Shown here: in pieces, positions 3,820 through 15,800 of the stretch | How positions within the stretch are numbered: position 1 is the first letter of the stretch | Layout of the letters: the number at the start of each line of letters is the position of its first letter | Source of the DNA: Oculina patagonica | Taxonomy: Eukaryota | Length of the DNA stretch: 64,000 bases | Reading direction: 5' to 3' | Assembly: GCF_052425735.1 (NCBI RefSeq) | Contig: NC_135759.1 | Coordinates: 29,760,001-29,824,000 of the forward strand | Position numbers and translations under genes: made by a program | The notes under the pieces: generated by a model | Seen by the model: only the letters and a program-made list of their open reading frames with translations | Told to the model about the DNA's origin: nothing | Database searches by the model: none

Positions 3820-6800
3820 CAAAGTTCTAACGATTAAAAAAACACACTAAGGTTTTCTTTTTGGAATATCTCATTCTACCTAAGACGTCATAAATTCTAA
3901 CAAATCCACCGTATTGGATCCTCCATCTTAGATAATAACAATTTAAATTATATTTTTGTAATATCCAGCCTACAATTGGATAATATAATTAATTTGTGTA
4001 ATTGATTTCAATTGACAGATCTGATGAGCAAATTAGAATCTGACGACTTCGATGACATTAATGACGCAATCACTCCCCAGTCCCTTGGAAGATGCAAAAC
4101 GAATGTTTTATTTACAGCATTTAAGGTCTGAGTTCGAACATGCAAACAATAAAATAATTGTAGCTCCACTCATGAGAGTACAGATGTACAAGCCGTTTGA
4201 ATCAGCATGGTTAAAAGTTATGTTGTTAACACTACATACTCATTAAAGCAAAGATTCATTCGCGCCGTAGACTAATTGGCTCTTCTATAAGTAATGTAGA
4301 AGCTTTAAGCTTTCGTTACGATCTTGAACCCAAAGTATTGCCAAATTCCAAAGGATCATTAGCAGATAATGTAACACTGATACCGGGCTATTGTTGGTGG
4401 TTTCTGTGTAAGTTGAACTTCCCCTCACTATATCCAGAAAAATCCTGAGGACTGGCATTTTCTCTCATAATACTTATTTTCAGGTGAGTGGGTTCCTTCA
4501 GGACAAAGCTCGGCAAGAACGACCAGATGTAGAGGAGCTAAAGAAGTTAGCAAGTTCTGTGGACGAGTTTACAACAAGCTTGATAGATCCACTGAAGTCG
4601 GACAAACCATCACGGGAAGCCTTTGGTGATTCTCTTGACTCTATTATAGACAAGGCCATTGAATATAAGCAGATGAAGGTAAATATACCGACATATATAT
4701 TTAAAAATAACGCATTATTACCCTGAATTGCAAATAATGCTACGTTTTCATAAGGATGGCAGCAACTTGTTTTAACCATGAAGGTTTCCTTTAACTGTAA
4801 ATTCGGAACTTTTGGATCGTTACTTTTAGATATTATTTAAAAAAAAAAACATTCACCCAACATGATTGCGTGGAAGGCCAACGAATGGGGATAAAAGACG
4901 TACTACTGTATAAATCAATAACTCACCTTCCATTTCTGGGGGCGCGGTGACCGAATTGCGGATTGTTAGTGCGCTGGGCTCCAGATCGAGGAGTCTGGTT
5001 CAAGCTCAAGCCGGGGGTCACTGCGTTGTATAATTGAGGAGGACACTTTACTCTCATAGTGCCATTCTCCCCCAGGTGTATCGTGTGCCGGTGAATTTAA
5101 TGCTTGAAGGTAACCCTGTGATGGACTAGCACCCCATCCAGGGAGGCGAAGAAATACTACTAGTCGCTTCATGCTACGGAAATCTAAATGAGCTCCGGCC
5201 TGATGGGCAATTATGCCCGTAGGCAGACTTACTAAACCTTTTCTTTTGCATTTCAGTTTATTTCTCATCCTGTTGTATACAACTTGCTAGACAAGCGTTG
5301 GATAGGACAGTTCTATGCTTGGAAGTCTCACTACTGGAGTTGGGCATTCATGTGGTTTTGGTGTTTCTTGGAGGTGATTCTGTTTCCGTTCATATTCGCC
5401 ATTTTCTACGTCAGGGACAAGGCAAGAATATGGATAAGGAAATATCAAGGTTTGAAACACTCTTTTGCTTCAGATATAACTATTTCTCGATACCAGCAAA
5501 ATCTGTACATGTAACTTTAAGTTACCGCCGCAATTTATAGTTGTGTCTAACAGGCACGATCATTTCGAGCAATGAACAACATCGCAAGGAGGAGCTCGTG
5601 TAAAACTTTCGTTTAGCCTCGTGGAAAAATTAATGCTCATGACCTAAAATAAAGTGCCAATGGACATTCTTTATCTATTTTATCCACGATGAATCATTGA
5701 GTATGAGAAAAATAAAGATCTTGAATGCATTGCCCGCTCGAAACCTTTGAAAAAATGAATTTTGTGTTGAAAGCGAAGTGTTAATTCTCCATGGTTGGTC
5801 CGCCTGTGCCGTCTTACAGGTTGTTTTGGATCAAAATAAGTACTGTTCGTAAGGCAATTTAATTCATAGTCATACTTTATTCTTCGTTTTGCATACAAAC
5901 CAGTGTCAGCATTGATATTTCTTTTGAGAACCGTTTTTTTAATAATTTTTTTTATAGATTACAGCATCTGCTTCATCCTTCATACCGAGGGAAAAACTGG
6001 AGACGAGAGCTTTAATCTTATGAAGCAATGCATGTCGCGAGTCATTCATCAGTGCGGAGTCAGATCTGTTAATTATTGCGTGATCAGCAGTATGCAAGGA
6101 GAAGCATACCAGCATGTGGCATTCCAGAGGCAATTTGATAACGAATGTTCACTGGTAAAGAAAATTCTAGCGATGGAAAGGGACACTAAACGAACGCGTG
6201 CGACAATTGACGATGACGTTCAAGAAGCATTAATCGTCTTTGAGGGTCAGACTGCAAGAAAGAAGGTTTGTTCTTATGAAAGTAAACGTCAAACACATTG
6301 ACAACAACAACAACAATAATAATCAGAGATTAACAAATAAATGATGGACTTTTAAACTGAAGGAATGACAATGTCTTATTACACGGTCTAATAATGCGGG
6401 GTTTTTTTTCTTGTCGACAGATTCTTTTCTTGTTTACTAATGATACGTCAAGTTTGCACGGCCAGGCTCGGTTAAGACACGGAAAATTAGAATTTGATGC
6501 CAAGAAACTTAGAAAAGAACTGGAAGTTAAAATTGTGCCCATCGCCATAGGAGATAGTGCTTCTGTGGACGACCTAAGGGACATTGCTTCAATACCCGAC
6601 CGTGCTATCTCAGGCAGAGTGAGCGAGGATCCTTCACATTTGGGACGTAAACTTTTAAGAGGTTGGTTCGTGCTTTTAGTCCTCGTTAAAAATTAAAATG
6701 TTGCACTTAAATTTAGAATACTTGTTTATACATTAAAGAGATACGAAAACCGCAAAAAAACCTGTAGGCTGGATAGACACTTTAAGTCTTCCTCCAAAAG

Positions 6801-9800
6801 AAATTTAGTATAAAGCACTTTGTATCATGTATTTTTATTTTGGGGAAAATATTAAACTGAAAAATGAAATGAAATATTTATCTGGCAGGAACTGCAATCC
6901 TATGATGTTTTTTTTAAATTTTTAAAAGTGCATTATGTTTATAGTTTTACTTTTTTACTTTTTTTAAGAAGAGCATTGTCGCCGTTGTTACACAAGGCAT
7001 GTTACTATTACTTCAGAAATAATAAAACATCTTAGGGCGGATCTAGGGGGAAAGGTGCAGGGGATGGCACCCTCCCCCCTCCCTCCTGAGATGACCTGTG
7101 GCTTTCTAAGACTTTCTAATACTGGTATTATTCAGAAAAAAATGTGGTTTATTGGTGAACCCCTCCTAAGAAAAATCCTGGATCGGCCCCTCAACTTACA
7201 ATCAAGATCTCATTATTTGCAGATGTCAATGTAACCTTGTAAAAAAATAGTTTAAAATTTACACTCAATTGCTGTTGCTGTTTTCTTTTAATAGTGGTTT
7301 ATGGAGCCAGTTTTCGTGGTAAGAATTATTTTTTTTTATCTTTTATCCCTGTATAGATAAAATTCACTCAAACAATTTATAGAATTTTTTAATTACAGAA
7401 ACATGAATTTTCTGTTTTCAGTGCTATTTCCTCCTATTTAATTATAATTTAAATAATTGCGTGATTCCCAGTCAACACTTTCTGTATGTAACGTACATAA
7501 CAATATCGATGAAATGTCATCGCGTGTATCATAAATTAATTCATTTTTGACTAAAACGTTTTAACCCTATTCAGACCGGGGGGGGGGGGGGCTTTTGAGG
7601 CCCGCGCTCTCTTTGAACTTTTATAACTTTTTTAAGATTTAACCAAACGCTGCCAAACTTTCTGAGTTTTCCTAAAATTTATCTGGCAACAAATTGTTAG
7701 GGATGGATGATGTGTCAGGAACTTGACATCACCATGGCAACGGCATTTTGACAGGCATGTTTTCCCAAATTTGTAATTTTGCGTGTTTCTGTTAATAAAA
7801 ATCAACTTAAATGGCATTATTTTTACATTTTTACGGGTTTAAAGCACATTTTTATTCATTTTGAGTACTAAGCAATGATTTTGGGTGGTTTTCTGGCATT
7901 TTGGAAAAATTTTTAAATCCAAGATGGCGGATCCAAGATGGCGGCTGTTTTGACATCATGATGTAATTGTCACGTGATGTGACGTCACCATCCCACGTGA
8001 CGTATACCAAAAGAAAGAGTTTTGGACGTACAATACATCCTATAAGTTTCATGGTGATTCCTTAAGTATTCTGGAAGTTACATAGGGGGGCTTCCGAAGC
8101 CCCCCCTCCCCCCGGTCTGAGAAGGTCCAAAAAAAGCCCGGTCTGAATAGGGTTAACACTTCACATTGAAGAAGTATCCGTTCATTGCTATAAAATCTTC
8201 TCCTTTCCTTAAAAAGGTTTTACCCTTGCATGATTTGCCTTATTAACCCGTGTAATAATCGATAAAAATAACAGCAATATCACTACTGTTAATTTCAGAG
8301 CTGTACCTTGATTACTACGTTACGCCGTACTTCATATTTGCAAGAGACACACTGAGCTACTTTTCCCTGCTTGGTCTTCATGTTGCCATATGTCTTTCCC
8401 CATCGGTCAATACCTTCACTATGGTGGAATGGGCCATTCTGGTGTTCTTTGTGGGCCGTTTCGTTGTGGAGCTCGATCAGTGCTTTAAGAGTGCACCTAA
8501 GGAGTTATCAGCCTCCATGCAACAACAGGCAGCAAGACCAACACATCTGAAAGTCAAGTCAATGGCATCACGAATGCTTAACTCATATCTAAGGTACGTA
8601 TGGTAACAGAAGAATGCGGAACATAGCTCAAAAATGAATTAATTAGGAAAGAAAAGTTTTCTTAAACTTAATGATTGGAGAATGCATCAACTTGGAAAAT
8701 ATGTTTTCCGTCTTAACCTTGATTCCAAAACGCTTTCTTTTCAAATCAAATGATGTAATCGTAGAAAGCTGCTAGGTTTAGAGCAGACTCGCTACGTTAA
8801 TTATAATTTTTTAAATGACGAAACCTCTCAGTCTTTTGAAAGTTCGTCTTCAGGTCAGCCATATTTTAAATTATGGATAACAGAAGCTCACGATGTCTTA
8901 TTAACCCTATTCAGCCGGGTTTTTGTTCAAAAGCCTGAGTCAACTATTACATTTAACACTATTTAGCAGAACCAAGTGGTCGACTATGATACTGTTTGGC
9001 TCACGATCCAAACAGGCACCTACTTAAGATCCAATGAAAATCCCGGCTTAGTAAAGTTTTATAGCCGTAACGTTATCATGATAGGAAAGTTCAATAAGTG
9101 AAGAATTACGTATAATGTAATAATTTATCTCCTAGTGATCGTTGGAATGTGCTGGACTTGATCACTCTTGTTGTCTACTTCATCACATTTATATTGCGTG
9201 TGATCACGTGGGGAATTTCCACACATGTGGCTGGAAACCGGCTGCTGGTTATTGCGCAATACTTGTATGGCCTCAACGCTACCATCTTGACTTTACGGGT
9301 GTTCGGGAGTCTTTTGGAAGCTAACAAAGGGACAGGGATTACCCACATTGCTCTCGTCAGCATTGTCGAAGACGTGGCGATCATATTTATCCAGTTTTTT
9401 GTGGGGATATTAGCATGCTCGTTGGCGATGACCAAAGTACTAATTGCCGAGCACTCTTATACGGGTGTTGACGAGGAAGTTGCAGGGTAAGAAAATTTTT
9501 TTTTTTACGAAAACCTATCCGCCTTCAGTGCCTTTTCCATATTCCTTGGTCTAACGGTTTTAGATTTTCAACGAATATTAAATTTTGACAAGCTACATAA
9601 CGGTTTTCTGCTGCCCAAGCTTAGCTCGTAAAGTGAATAAAACTGCTTTTTTAAAGATATCTCCGCAATGCGGTGATTCTTGATTCGATGAACAGAACCT
9701 TTCCTGCTTCATCATGACTGAGATAAGTCTTAGTAAATAAAGGTTTAATACTAACAATTTTCGTCATCACTGGCCTGAACTATGAACCGATTGCAATATC

Positions 9801-12800
9801 TTTCTTCTCTCAACAGAAAAGAAACTGAGAAAAATAAAACATTACGCTTTGGCAAATAAGACAATTACAATTTAATTACTGCAATCATAACTTAATTTGT
9901 TAATACTTTAATAAGTGATAATAATTTAATTTCTTTGTTTTTTTTTTATCTCAAGGCTATGCAGTGGCACTGGAATCTCTTGGTAATTTGATGTATTTTA
10001 AAAAATATATAATTCATAAGCGATCGAGCGAAGCATACTTAGGAGCTATTATTCCGTTCTGTTTGTAGGTTATACCAATAGTATTTATTTCTCACAGAGA
10101 ATTTTCCTTATTTGGTGGGCCACTATGATTGCAGCCCACGACCGACCGACCAGCTGACCGACCGACCGACCAACAAAGAAATTATTGAACAACGAACAAA
10201 CAATACGAGTAAATGCAATAAACAATCGAACAAACAAACCACGCTGTCCTTCTCTTTTTTGTTAGTCCCTTTTAAGCTAAATCTTATAACCATAAAACAA
10301 TCGCGTCACTTGCGGTGCTTGGCTTATTCATAAGTTTAGTATTTAGTAACGAAGTTTCTGCAGATAATTATTATCTCGTACTAACAATTATCTTTCCTTA
10401 TGATTGACTATTAATTTTTCTTCCGATTCAGTTGGTGGGAAATTGTTAAGCACCTCGGTTGGACACTTCTCGGCATTGCAGACGTGGAGCCCTTCACCTC
10501 GAGTGACTCGTTATCTAACAACATTGCGCAAGCACTGTACGCTGGCTTTATCATAGCAGCGCTCATTCTTCTGGTCAATATGATGATCGCTGTTCTATCC
10601 AGTACTTACGAGCGAGTAGAGGTAAGGGAAAGGCCTGACACCACTTTAAAATTTTCTCTCTTTTTTATTTCTTCGTTACGTCACAGTGAAACGTGTACCA
10701 TCTACATTATAGCGTCGGCAAGTGCCAAGGTCACTCTTAGCTGATTGGGGGGGGGCATTTTATTTCTGTTATTTATTCTTAAGCACATTTTCAATTTTTT
10801 TTTAGTTTTTTTTTTACGTTGTGTGGGCGTAAGGGTAATAACAAACGGGAAATGAATAAAGGAAATTCATGTCCCCGATGCTCTGCAAACAGTTAGAATT
10901 GTAATCTTTTTGCCTGGCTCAAAAACTTTTATTGAAAAAATGCAGTATGTAGTATTTTTTGTGGTCATATTTCGCTCCTCCGTTTTAAAGGGTAGATATG
11001 GTGCTCATTGCTTATGGAAACCTTAAAGGAAGCTTTGATTCTTTTGTTTTAGTTTCTACTGGGATATTACTTTTTCTCCGGCGATGATCAAATATACAGT
11101 TAACCCGAACTAATGTTTTTTGCCTTGTAGAGCAACTCGCTTAGAGAATGGTCTTTGAGAAAGGCCATCATTATCCGAACATTCAGCAACTATCATCCTA
11201 TTCCAGTACCATTGAATTTGATATCCCAGTTTGTAATGTTATTACTGAAATGCTTCAAAGCCTGTCGACGTAGATATGGCTCTCGCAAGTGTTACAGTCA
11301 AATATCTGACTCCGGAATCACATCCGAAGACGATGCAGCTAGTGTAGAGAAGGTAAAAAGGCTGTTTAACAAATATTTTCTGGTTTAGTGAGTAAATAAC
11401 ACAGTCAACTCACTCTAAGACGGACACAGTTGGGACCGACTCCAACTGTCCGTATTAGAGAGGTGTTCGTCTTATAGGGAGTTTAGTTACAGCGAAATGA
11501 CTGAAAAACGGCAGTGGCAGGACCAACAGCAGGTGTCCGTCTTATAGAGATGTCCGCTTAGAGAGGGTTGACTGTATACTAAAACAGTGGATAGCGTTTT
11601 TGGCGCGCACTGATTAGCTACTCAAACTCTAATTATACTTTGCTATTCACCTCCGAGCATCGCGCGCGAGAAAATTGTGACCTTTGACAAGAATAAACTA
11701 GTCGAAAACCGTCCTTTTTTTTTTGGGCTATATTATCTCACCGTTTTAGTATATACTAAAACAACAGTACTATTCACCTCGAGAGTGTCGGTGGCTAGCG
11801 GTGGATATTTACATCGCCGCTTCGCGGCTCGGTAAATCCTCCACTTCGGTGTATAGTTGTTAAATATTCATTATTAGAAAAAATAAGAGAAATGCGGTTA
11901 ACAATCCATATTAAAGATTTCTCTTTTAAAAAAATACATGTAGTCATTACTGCATGGGTAAGCGACGTAAATGCTCAAATCCGGCCTGACTACATTAGCG
12001 TCTATGGGTAAATTCTTTTCTGTGATTTAGGATGATTTTTCCAGACAATTGTCATGATTAGAGGCTCCATGAAGAAATTCTTGATTATGACCTTATATTC
12101 ATTGCTCTTAGGACAGAAATTTGGAGAGTATTCTCGATAAGCTGAAAGCCGTGTACTTTTCAACGCATGGATCCTCGTTCCCTTTAACAGGTAACAAATA
12201 CATTTTTGATGATGATGATGATCGTTATTGGGGGGGATTATTATTACTATTTTCAAAAACTCATTAATGTTGGTTGGGGGGGGGGGGGGGGGGGGGGATA
12301 TCATTAAGAAAATACAAATGAAATTAATGTTTAATGAGTGTCTCTATATCTGATAAAGATACAGCTAAATTTTGTCCAATTTTCTTGGCCAAAATAAACC
12401 AAAATCTAAATATTAGTGCAAATTAGATTGAAAATATCTACATCAGATGTTTTTGAAGCCGTTCAATAAACTCGCAGTTCGTGCTATATCGCGTCTAAAA
12501 CACTCGGCTGCGCCTCGTGTTTTAAACTTGATAAACCACTTCTGCTTGTTTATTAAACATTCCTTTAACCTGCAGCTTATAGTTTTTTTTTTTCTGTTTT
12601 GTCCGTCCACATTGTAATCCGTCGGTGACGCAATCTGCAGGCCTGACACTAGTATACATAATCACACACAAGGCGCCCTCCAAGGCTGTGGCAGATTTCA
12701 AGTGATTTCAAAAGCATTACTGACGACAGTATAACTATGTTTGTAATGTCTTTAAGGGCCTATGGTTGAGTTCCAGCACAGTTTTTTTTAATTTGGTGGT

Positions 12801-15800
12801 TCAACTTATAATTATAATTTTTATAATTATGTTCAAAGTCAGACAAGGGACTCATGTTGTATTCGTTACTTTTCTTTAAAAGATGAAAGCAAGATCAGTA
12901 ACATGCTAATCGAGACACGCAGGAATCGTGAAATGTGCAATCAAATTGCCCGGAAAGTTTTCTTCAACCAATCTCACACCACCAAGGTAGCTCCTGTTGG
13001 TCCTGATGTAAGTATGACGCGCTCCAGTTCATACCACAACTATGAATCTATAGTTTAAGCCTATGTCTAAAGAATATCATTGCACTGGCCTTAGATAACA
13101 GCTTTTAATGGACGTTGGTGATGAAATCCCTCTGCTCGGTACCCAAAATATAAATTATCAGGAGAGAAAAGATGTTGGTTGTAATGGACTCCTATCTGCC
13201 ACTAAGTGAATATATTATGAGGCAGACGTTGTCTCTGACTAAGTGTTCAGAACGAATTATCGCACGACATGATGTAAAAAGTGCACTTATAATAATACTG
13301 GATAATAGAACGATAAGTATATTTAATAAATGCTTTTAAGCATTTAACTGATTTATTAACTATTTAAAAATAGTTAATTAATTAATTAATTCATTTAAAA
13401 CCATGAAAATAATATTTATTAAGCTAATGTTAATACTGTTAGGCATGGATCAGTCCTGGAATACAGATTGAAGGCTGTTTATTTACTATGTTGGTCGCGA
13501 CCTTTGCAAAACCTGCAAGTTGGAAGCACAAAATTTCCATGGAGCTAGATATAAACTACCATTCTCTGAAAACTTTCCTAAACTTGAGGTAAGAAAGTAA
13601 AAATATTGCACTGTGTATCATTATTTCAAAATGTGTGTCAAGCTACTCAGTTTAGAGTCATTTTGAAGAAAGCAATTATTTTAAGAGTAGAACCGAGCGC
13701 AAATTAAAAACTAAAGTGAAAGAAATTTATCCTTAACCTGATTTCATATTTAAAAAGCATAGTCCGTAGTTATAGATAACAAAATAATATAACACAAACA
13801 AAAAACAAGAACTGCCCATGAAAGACGAAATCACCTGTATAAACTGATGATAATGATGATCCCTGAATACAACTTTACTGGCTTTTATCGACATTTGACG
13901 AAACGCGAAAGACATTCATTGTTGTCGTTACTCACAGATTGCATATCTTCACATTGAACATTATTTTAAAATAATGAATAATAATTATTACATAATATGC
14001 AGTGGTATAGCGAGTGGTAGCAGATCGATAAAAATGGTATCACACATGTGTGGATAAAAATGGTATCCACACATGTGTGATATCATTTTTGACCAATCAG
14101 ATCGCAGTGGTTACCATGTTATAATGTTCAATGAACCAAAGTTCATCGATATTAAGTCGAAACATCTTCGGATCTTCCTCGGCAAACTTCTGAAATTTTC
14201 GAAAAAGTTCGGAAAATGTTCGGCAACATTCGTACAGCCTTCGGACCACATTTTGGAAATCTTCGGAAATCTTCGGTAAATGGTCGGAAATCTTCGGAAA
14301 ATCGTCATAAACATCGTAATTTAGTAGGTTTGTATAATAAACAGAATTGCGCTTACTCGTGACATATCGATTTGAACACTCGAAGATAAATTTCAATATG
14401 TCCGCGCAACCATGTATTATTCTCTATATAATAATGCCTTTTTTGTTAGGTCTTGATACAGGAAGATGGAAAGAAACGACAGTTGGTTGTTGGAGTGGCA
14501 AGGGTCAACCACAAACTACACAAGTCAGCTGGCGAGTCTAATGACACCATAGGCTATTATACTTCTGATGGTCATCTTCTTGACGCTTGTGAAAAGAAAG
14601 GGTCCAAAAGTGGCCAACCAGTTGAAGGTATCAGCCATTAAATCATCTCTTCAGAACAGAACTAGTATATTAAGTATTTGGAGTAAGGGAGTATTTCTCA
14701 CTGGTGTCCAGTTCAGGTTAATACCTTAGAAAAACATAAATAATCTTCAAAGCTAAGTTATTCTTGACAGAAACATACCATCAAAATTAATCTCGTAGAT
14801 TGCAAGAAAGAGGCAAAGTAGACCTCCATCCCACCTAGTTAATCTTACCAGTGACATCAATTGCTCTACACAGGGTCTTGGATAACATTTCTTGCGTGAT
14901 GTCAGATGCACCTTTACTCAGGGAACATCTATGTACTTGTTAAAATAGGCTAAACAAGAATTAAGTCCAAATTTAGCTTTTAGCTTTTATTTTTTTTTTT
15001 TTTTTTTTTTTAGATTTTCTTTACTTGCTTGGCTAGCTGATTTTGAAATCTCATTACAGATAAAATGGCCTATCGAGGTGACCTGATTGTTTGTCTTGTC
15101 GACTTTGACAAACTCGATGAAGAAAGCCGAGTCCCAATTAATTTTACCTTAAACGGAGCACTGATATACGAGGCCTTGATGAAATACGAAAAAGGAAAGA
15201 GAGAGCTTTATCCCTTCATAGGAATGTGTCACAAAGGCATTCGTGTTCTCGCCAAGGTAAGAAGAATTGTCACCAAAAAGGTCGGGACACACTAGGCGAC
15301 AATTCGCTGCAACATGTTGCCTCGTGTGACATGGTGCATTCCTGCGACAGAATATTGTCGCTGCGATCAGTCGCACGAATTCAAACCAGTTTGAATTCGT
15401 GCGACTGATCGCAGCAACAAAATGACAGAGCGAAAGGAGCGTTGTCGTAGCGTGTGCACCTTTCTGCGACAGCTTGCTGCGACAAAATATAAATTAACCA
15501 ATGACAGGGCGTCATGTATTTTCGCCATATTTAGTTGGAAAACTAGTTCACATTCCCACTATTTCAAATCGGCTGCGTGTCAAGCGCCGTTGGGTTGAAT
15601 CAGTAAACACGGAGCGACTTGTCGCAGAGACCTGTCGCTGCGACTTGTCGCCTTGTGGTCCCGACCTTAAACCATAATCTACAATAATTCAATACAATAA
15701 TAATAATACAATAATTGACTACAAAACCTAAGGATACAAAATAAAATGTTAATGGAAATTTTTCAAAACATCTTCACACGCCGGGCCAGGAGAGCGCTCG

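Follow-up and report, generated by a model that had tools for sequence, protein, structure and literature searches.

Animals rely on transient receptor potential (TRP) channels as their main polymodal sensors, and what these channels respond to is set by their cytosolic domains. Some of them, the TRP chanzymes (TRPM2 with NUDT9H, TRPM6 and TRPM7 with a kinase), have acquired a foreign globular domain, which is carried at a terminus of the chain. Domain gains among TRPM channels have also been described (PMC13143021). [quoted passage not shown] Here we describe a multi-exon channel gene on the + strand of a 529-Mb stony coral genome, that of Oculina patagonica, within the 64,000-nucleotide stretch C2:29760001-29824000 (the window, whose numbering is used below), in which a von Willebrand A (vWA) domain is encoded at the junction of elbow and pre-S1 helix. 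Unlike the chanzyme domains, it is non-enzymatic and is placed inside the chain, with the elbow on one side and S1 on the other. The TRPM4 bridge loop, likewise in the pre-S1 region, shows that group-1 TRP channels can take up about 60 extra residues in their pre-S1 linker (PMC6079076); however, that loop is not a folded domain, lies on the other side of the elbow and belongs to a different subfamily.

By its sequence, the coral gene encodes a divergent TRPC-like channel and not a TRPC member. Its pre-S1 elbow exon (5257..5449), which reads FISHPVVYNLL, a hydrophobic hairpin and RKYQ up to a phase-1 end with one spare base, aligns with TRPC4 residues 299-353, the elbow of that channel (phmmer E 2.6e-4). 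A paralog profile of the S3-S5 exon (9136..9486) finds TRPC4/5 best (E 2e-5), followed by TRPC6/3 and TRPM2 (the latter at 3e-3). TRPC4 and TRPC5 (PDB 5z96, 6g1k and 7b05 among others) thus resemble the coral protein in the elbow, in S3-S5, in an EW-type TRP box with a P-x-P-F-N-L motif after it and in the S6 motif LVNMMIA, but differ from it in several ways. The coral gene has EWSLRK as its TRP box (EWSFKK in paralogs) and LGW as its pore motif, related though not identical to the EWKFAR and LFW of TRPC. The S1-S2 exon (8299..8593, which also encodes the pre-S1 helix) has the TRPM2 chanzyme as its sole match, and a SPRY-like domain stands at the C-terminus. Instead of the direct junction between elbow and pre-S1 helix, the coral chain has a 183-residue vWA domain and an 8-residue micro-exon. 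Finally, where the TRPC subfamily has four N-terminal ankyrin repeats, no such array was seen within 2-9 kb upstream of the pre-S1 exon, with Pfam applied to part of the upstream frames; the gene, its ortholog and four paralogs (L007, L013-L015) have only two conserved exons there (~4019-4125 and 4484-4678). Exon-by-exon Pfam searches of the channel and SPRY exons returned nothing significant, nor did a single-sequence search of PDB with the S3-S5 exon at E <= 0.01; it was profiles against PDB sequences that matched.

The inserted exons and their fold

The insert begins with two exons, 5958..6265 (308 nt; acceptor ...ttatag/, donor AAG/gt) and 6421..6661 (241 nt; acceptor ...gacag/, donor AG/gt), which together amount to 549 nt or 183 codons and are bounded on the outside by phase-1 introns and divided by a phase-0 intron. 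The first encodes strand A, helix 1, strands B and C and helices 2 and 3; the second encodes strand D (LFLFTND), helix 4, strand E (KIVPIAIGD), helix 5, strand F and the last helix. Splice sites are canonical throughout the cassette and the flanking exons that were read. The original prediction, made from the letters of the DNA, had placed a two-exon vWA block between phase-1 introns at 5958-6661; these coordinates are exact, and every peptide it quoted lies in the spliced frame. Its account of the extent of the insert holds for the two vWA exons but is too short by one, since a 24-nt micro-exon of phase 1-1 (7295..7318, VVYGASFR) also precedes the S1 exon, linking the vWA domain to S1, so that the inserted block comprises three exons. 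In paralogs B, C and D a micro-exon of 24 nt and phase 1-1 is predicted in the same intron (x-x-E/D-G-K/S-D-I/V-Y), equal in length and phase to that of the gene and unlike it in sequence. No counterpart was found by similarity in the ortholog contigs.

It is confirmed that the two vWA exons encode a genuine vWA domain. The spliced product of 182 residues matches Pfam VWA (PF00092) with a score of 37.5 bits (cut-off 23.8; E 3.6e-9), and the match spans positions 2-155 of the 174 in the profile. From the paralogs, a profile of each exon (A1 and A2) was built and searched against PDB sequences, and that of exon 1 matched collagen VI alpha-3 (E 1.2e-8) and integrin I domains, that of exon 2 the structure of PTMP1 (E 2e-5); VWF A2 was also among the solved structures matched. 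AlphaFold2 was run on each exon half separately. For the first half, with an alignment of 74 rows, the predicted local distance difference test score (pLDDT) was 86.7 and the elements ran E-H-E-E-H-H; Foldseek related it, at template-modelling (TM) scores of 0.77-0.80 normalised by the query, to VWF A1/A2, factor B, MIC2, PTMP1 and collagen VI. The second half was modelled at a pLDDT of 82.0 as E-H-E-H-E-H, and its Foldseek matches were led by PTMP1, CMG2 and VWF A3/A1, with weaker E-values, from 0.02. The two models reproduce the strand and helix order proposed from the sequence, with beta and alpha elements alternating as in a dinucleotide-binding-like fold (A-1-B-C-2-3 and D-4-E-5-F-6), and a language-model feature search of the ESM Atlas returned vWA clusters as well. 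VWF A1 is the best structural match to the first half (TM 0.77-0.80), although VWF A1 and A3 share only 10-11% sequence identity with the insert and are extracellular and disulfide-bridged. A search of representative proteins gave exon-sized genomic open reading frames (ORFs) and multi-vWA matrix proteins only, and no full-length TRP-vWA protein; a homolog search with the 143-aa ORF gave 16 exon fragments. Three transcript-like cluster members (P0206, P0208 and P0191), considered as whole-domain proteins, prove to be intron read-through.

The metal ion-dependent adhesion site (MIDAS), formed by D-x-S-x-S, a Thr and the Asp of T-D-G, marks the metal-dependent members of the vWA family, not the fold. 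In the exon-1 profile alignment, the D-G-S-G-S of the integrin alpha-X I domain stands opposite H-T-E-G-K, and the strand D (beta-4) motif reads T-N-D in the gene as against T-D-H in most paralogs. The degenerate site that had been read as HTEGK and TND is therefore borne out in this gene, and it extends to the family: D-x-S-x-S occurs in none of the 11 vWA-bearing paralogs and in none of the orthologs. The MIDAS loop reads NATSE in five paralogs and NATGK, NTTSK, TLSKD and SLSSD in one each, and HTAVN and HTAGN in orthologs. At the same position, three matrix-type relatives, exons on C10, read SATSA, NAVSI and SATSV. Because these relatives are also without a MIDAS, the loss of the metal site most likely preceded the capture of the domain, and would have been inherited from the donor family rather than evolved in the channel. 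Within the vWA family, VWF A1 and A3 lack a functional MIDAS and yet bind protein ligands.

The vWA exons belong to the mRNA of the channel, because RNA contigs join the flanking channel exons to the cassette. The RNA consists of assembled contigs from four public runs mapped on 5100-9600, a low-depth set from which rare variants are dropped. The joint 5449 to 5958 occurs in three runs (X1, X2 and X6), with 99-193 nt on the shorter side; X1 also has the joints 6661 to 7295 and 7318 to 8299, whose sides measure 26 and 25 nt; and the joint 8593 to 9136 occurs in X1 and X6. All of these are GT..AG. The inner joint 6265 to 6421 is not among the RNA joints listed and is supported by splice-site conservation in the paralogs and by the continuous Pfam match; one RNA contig begins 9 nt before 6419. 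It had been proposed that skipping of the cassette would restore a plain channel in frame, and the arithmetic of the phases agrees, as both outer introns are of phase 1 and joining 5449 to 7295 gives g/tg (GTG) and 5449 to 8299 gives g/ag (GAG). Such a plain version would be encodable, since there are natural vWA-less paralogs in which the S1-S2 exon is open and intact and the splice sites are canonical. The gene might then yield both plain and vWA-bearing channels by regulated splicing. However, the skipping joint that had been suggested for search, from 5449 to either 7295 or 8299, is present in the assembled contigs of none of the four runs, as compared with three for the inclusion joint, and the vWA exons are included in every transcript contig that covers them. 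This argues weakly against alternative splicing, because contigs lose rare variants, and we regard a regulated cassette as unlikely.

Probable capture at a phase-1 intron and inheritance in the family

Searches of the genome with the S1-S2 and S3-S5 exons reveal about 29 TRPC-like loci, and searches with the vWA exon profiles place the vWA exon pair directly upstream of the S1 exon in 11 of them: the present gene, six further loci on C2 (at 30.56, 28.167, 28.147, 24.32, 40.9 and 28.64 Mb), one on C1 (10.51 Mb) and three copies on C6 at 3.1 Mb. The order pre-S1, vWA1, vWA2, S1-S2, S3-S5, pore and TRP box is common to paralogs A-D, and six further paralogs have the vWA exons upstream of S1. The outer phase-1 acceptor and inner phase-0 donor, read from the splice sites, are alike in A-D, and so are the inner phase-0 acceptor and outer phase-1 donor in A-C, exon 2 of D lying outside the locus inspected. 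The exon order is kept in other assemblies (a Tara metagenome scaffold, L020; ERZ25071802, L021; ERZ26858540, L064-66), where the orthologs are 60-69% identical to the gene in the vWA domain and 78-86% in the membrane exons. A vWA domain within the channel is hence a family trait, found in 11 genes here and in contigs of at least three other assemblies, and not special to one gene. No description of a vWA-bearing TRP channel was found in the literature searched; the genome paper on Montipora reports an expanded TRPC-like family, there called TRPC6-like, and does not mention a vWA domain (PMC9145168).

The vWA-less paralogs disclose what the target site could have looked like. Two close relatives of the gene, C2:26.75M (L022) and C2:29.52M (L023), which in the membrane core are as close as the vWA-bearing paralogs, each show, exactly at the site of the cassette, one canonical intron of phase 1 and about 750 nt. 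The junctions read AAAG/gtaatt ... ggcag/GG in L022 and GGAG/gtaatt ... ggcag/AA in L023, preceded by the residues ...RK+G and ...NG+G and followed by the S1 exon. Whether the limits of the insert correspond to intron positions in paralogs without it had been set beforehand as the test on which the original prediction should fall, and in both paralogs they coincide with the phase-1 intron. In three copies of an adjacent seven-gene clade there is likewise one intron at this site and no vWA; one of the three has a canonical phase-1 donor and two lack the GT, and one has a stop codon in S3-S5, so that some copies of this clade may be decaying.

The nearest sequence relatives of the insert are matrix-type multi-vWA proteins, among them collagen VI alpha-3 (PDB 9han/9gtu), mussel PTMP1 (4cn8) and the nearest non-channel vWA domains of the genome, which form tandem arrays at C6:34.36-34.45 Mb, with >50 matches in 90 kb, and at C10:8.18-8.25 Mb (L006, L011, L016); the nearest public proteins combine multiple vWA with EGF and discoidin domains. 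These proteins are secreted and hold many repeats together with EGF and discoidin domains, whereas the channel copy is single, split by a phase-0 intron and probably cytosolic, and has gained several cysteines. Three C10 exons of one gene were inspected, and each encodes one whole vWA domain between a phase-1 acceptor and a phase-1 donor, with no cysteine and no MIDAS. A phase 1-1 module on the donor side and a phase-1 intron at the site in vWA-less paralogs are what the proposal of exon shuffling had implied. Further, in an exon-1 tree of 127 sequences, a branch with a Shimodaira-Hasegawa-like approximate likelihood ratio (SH-aLRT) support of 99 parts all 15 vWAs whose channel context is known, and 46 split fragments, from all 38 continuous matrix-type copies, a split that fits one capture. 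The vWA domain of each paralog is closer to counterparts in other assemblies than to any in its own genome, and the duplications are therefore older than those species splits.

The direction of the change was approached with a channel tree of the 29 paralogs (S1-S2 and S3-S5, 169 columns), in which the vWA state needs two changes. A seven-gene vWA-less clade stands against 22 others (support 100/100), and within the 22 an eight-gene C13/C5 clade, with no vWA detected, has a support of 98/97; the absence of the domain from the C11, C5 and C13 copies rests on the genome profile search. The vWA-less C2:26.75M nests among vWA-bearing genes. On these relationships, the simplest history would be one gain and one clean loss, with weak backbone support. 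It could be argued, on the contrary, that the vWA domain was ancestral to the whole family and was cleanly deleted several times, with no insertion into an intron at all. A clean loss is required for C2:26.75M in any case, and clade B has a poorly resolved backbone (supports 39-85). However, the domain is missing from all seven genes of the deepest clade, from two basal members of clade B and from the eight-gene C13/C5 clade, with the profile search as the basis for C11, C5 and C13, and an ancestral vWA would take at least four changes in place of two. We therefore consider the opposite polarity to be quite unlikely and favour a gain.

Constraint, topology and proposed role

Nei-Gojobori estimates of the ratio of non-synonymous to synonymous substitution rates (dN/dS) suggest that the vWA domain is constrained, yet the fastest-evolving part of the protein. 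For this domain the ratio is 0.24-0.27 between the gene and its orthologs, 0.27 between paralogs B and C, 0.27-0.60 within the C6 trio and 0.77 between two ortholog duplicates, as compared with 0.09-0.20 for the membrane exons of the same pairs. The last pair comes from another coral assembly (ERZ26858540), in which the ortholog is tandemly duplicated (L064/L065 and L066), and the copies diverge far more in the vWA domain than the membrane core predicts. Could the domain be a passenger without function that drifts neutrally in a tolerant loop? Compared with the membrane core it evolves two to six times faster, with ratios of 0.60-0.77 in recent duplicates, its MIDAS is gone, and C2:26.75M does without the cassette while nested among paralogs that have it. 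Nevertheless, both vWA exons are open in 11/11 paralogs and in the orthologs, the order of elements is preserved with confident models of the halves, the ratio stays at 0.24-0.27 in older pairs, and the close counterparts of the paralog domains in other assemblies imply retention through speciation. A domain under constraint is thus preferred, and a neutral passenger seems improbable.

On which side of the membrane the domain lies bears directly on what it could do. It is probably cytosolic, because the N-terminal exon contains no hydrophobic signal sequence, the elbow appears to be re-entrant as in TRPC4, keeping the LFP kink of that channel, basic residues stand to either side of it (...DKRW..WK.. 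and ..RDKARIWIRKYQ), several cysteines occur in the channel vWAs as compared with none in the three matrix exons inspected, and the TRP box must be cytosolic. Were the pre-S1 hydrophobic stretch to span the membrane in this family, the domain would instead be lumenal or outside the cell. Such a location would suit its nearest relatives, which are vWAs of the extracellular type (collagen VI alpha-3, PTMP1, VWF), and the N-x-T sequons that many copies have at the MIDAS loop (NAT) and strand D (NDT). However, with a seventh pass through the membrane, either the TRP box and the SPRY-like domain would end up outside or S1-S6 would be inverted, and the re-entrant alignment, the basic flanks, the missing signal sequence and the cysteines all speak for the inside, which leaves an extracellular domain very improbable. 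That the vWA exons belong to a nested or neighbouring gene and were drawn into the model by error is excluded by RNA contigs in which vWA exon 1 is joined to the pre-S1 exon and, by way of the micro-exon, vWA exon 2 to the S1 exon, in an order that recurs in 10 paralogs and in other assemblies.

Taken together, we hold it to be probable, with good though incomplete confidence, that a genuine vWA domain was placed in the short linker from the membrane-embedded elbow to the pre-S1 helix and S1 by a single exon-shuffling capture and was inherited by gene duplication, with a cytosolic docking role that would follow from its position. In this scheme, a phase 1-1 vWA module of the matrix-type multi-vWA family would have landed, once, in a phase-1 intron that an ancestral channel gene already possessed, and would then have passed through gene duplication (into 11 of about 29 paralogs) and across coral species. 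In the assembled tetramer the domain would lie at the cytosolic periphery, on the linker entering S1 and beside the TRP helix. There its most likely role would be metal-independent docking of a protein, whether a partner, a scaffold or a neighbouring subunit, and assembly, localisation or gating could respond to binding or lateral contacts near S1 and the TRP helix. The fast evolution of the domain would fit a tuning to partners specific to each paralog.

Several points weigh against this account. The RNA support comes from assembled contigs at low depth, the 183 residues were modelled as halves only, and the Foldseek E-values of the second half are weak (0.02). The cytosolic location and the docking role would follow from homology to TRPC4 and the logic of topology. 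Some fragments on the matrix side also break after ...KK, which makes the timing of the inner phase-0 intron ambiguous. Forcing the 11 vWA genes into one clade costs 5.5 log-likelihood units and is borderline rejected by the approximately unbiased (AU) test (p 0.043), so that at least one loss, or a second event, is needed. Moreover, the vWA dN/dS of recent duplicates, 0.60-0.77, could mean relaxed constraint and not tuning.

Gene context and wider meaning

The remaining exons of the gene, all on the + strand, complete its architecture. The N-terminal conserved exon (4019..4125), with an ATG at 4024, an uncertain 5' limit and a donor AAG/gt at 4125, is kept in the ortholog contigs L064-L066 and in paralogs. 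It is followed by a linker-helix exon (4484..4678) that ends in ...EYKQMK, is of phase 0 at both ends and is kept in paralogs, its protein being 81-84% identical to that of the ortholog. Beyond the cassette, the S1-S2 exon is 60-69% identical in paralogs, and the RNA contigs stop at about 9487, near the end of the S3-S5 exon. The exon of the pore helix, with LGW as against LFW of TRPC, and S6 (10432..10621) was assigned by direct reading, and that of the TRP box (11131..11274; EWSLRK ... HPIPVPLNL) has an approximate 3' limit. Three conserved C-terminal exons follow the TRP box (12112-12201, 12861-12977 and 13493-13594), and the SPRY-like domain is encoded in two parts, 14450..14608, kept in paralogs B, C and D, and 15065..15274, kept in four paralogs, the profile of this last exon matching the SPRYD3 structure 2yyo (E 0.0085).

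The intron between the micro-exon and the S1 exon contains an element of about 590 bp (7563-8150) bounded by inverted copies of gttaaccctattcagaccgg beside runs of G/C, resembling a miniature inverted-repeat transposable element (MITE); RNA contigs reach depths of hundreds to thousands over it, as for a transcribed repeat of many copies. Upstream of the window, at C2:29.64-29.757 Mb (L017-L019, L041-L047), lies a cluster of six related TRP genes without vWA, the nearest of which is on the minus strand, head-to-head with the gene, its S1-S2 exon 2.8 kb before the window start. In two copies of this cluster the pre-S1 exon ends without a GT donor (GGATAT), and in one a TAA falls within S3-S5; some of these copies may be pseudogenes or users of unusual splicing. 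The vWA-less paralog L023 (C2:29525400-29531000) has a run of about 520 N in its upstream part.

What could the capture mean for these channels? As an instance of exon shuffling it is unusually clean, for the donor-type module, the empty target site in sister paralogs and the product are all present in one genome. Further, the vWA module appears to have moved from the extracellular to the intracellular compartment, a crossing that, to our knowledge, symmetric matrix modules rarely make. A more ambitious reading, tentative and on balance doubtful, is that the matrix vWA domain, shuffled to the cytosolic face of a TRP channel, replaced together with the SPRY-like domain the ankyrin skirt, and that it acts as a tether or docking site at the pre-S1/S1 hinge where the binding of a cytoskeletal, scaffold or signalling partner directly biases gating, diversified from paralog to paralog to suit different partners. 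If true, it would give these channels a type of gating-input module that no TRP channel is known to have. A subfamily without ankyrin repeats, with a foreign protein-binding domain at the hinge between its cytosolic and voltage-sensor-like parts, would amount to a natural experiment in how inputs are wired to gating. TRPC-like genes are expanded in corals (PMC9145168), and with a third of the copies in the present genome carrying a variable, putative docking domain, the vWA insert may offer a handle on what such expansions sense.

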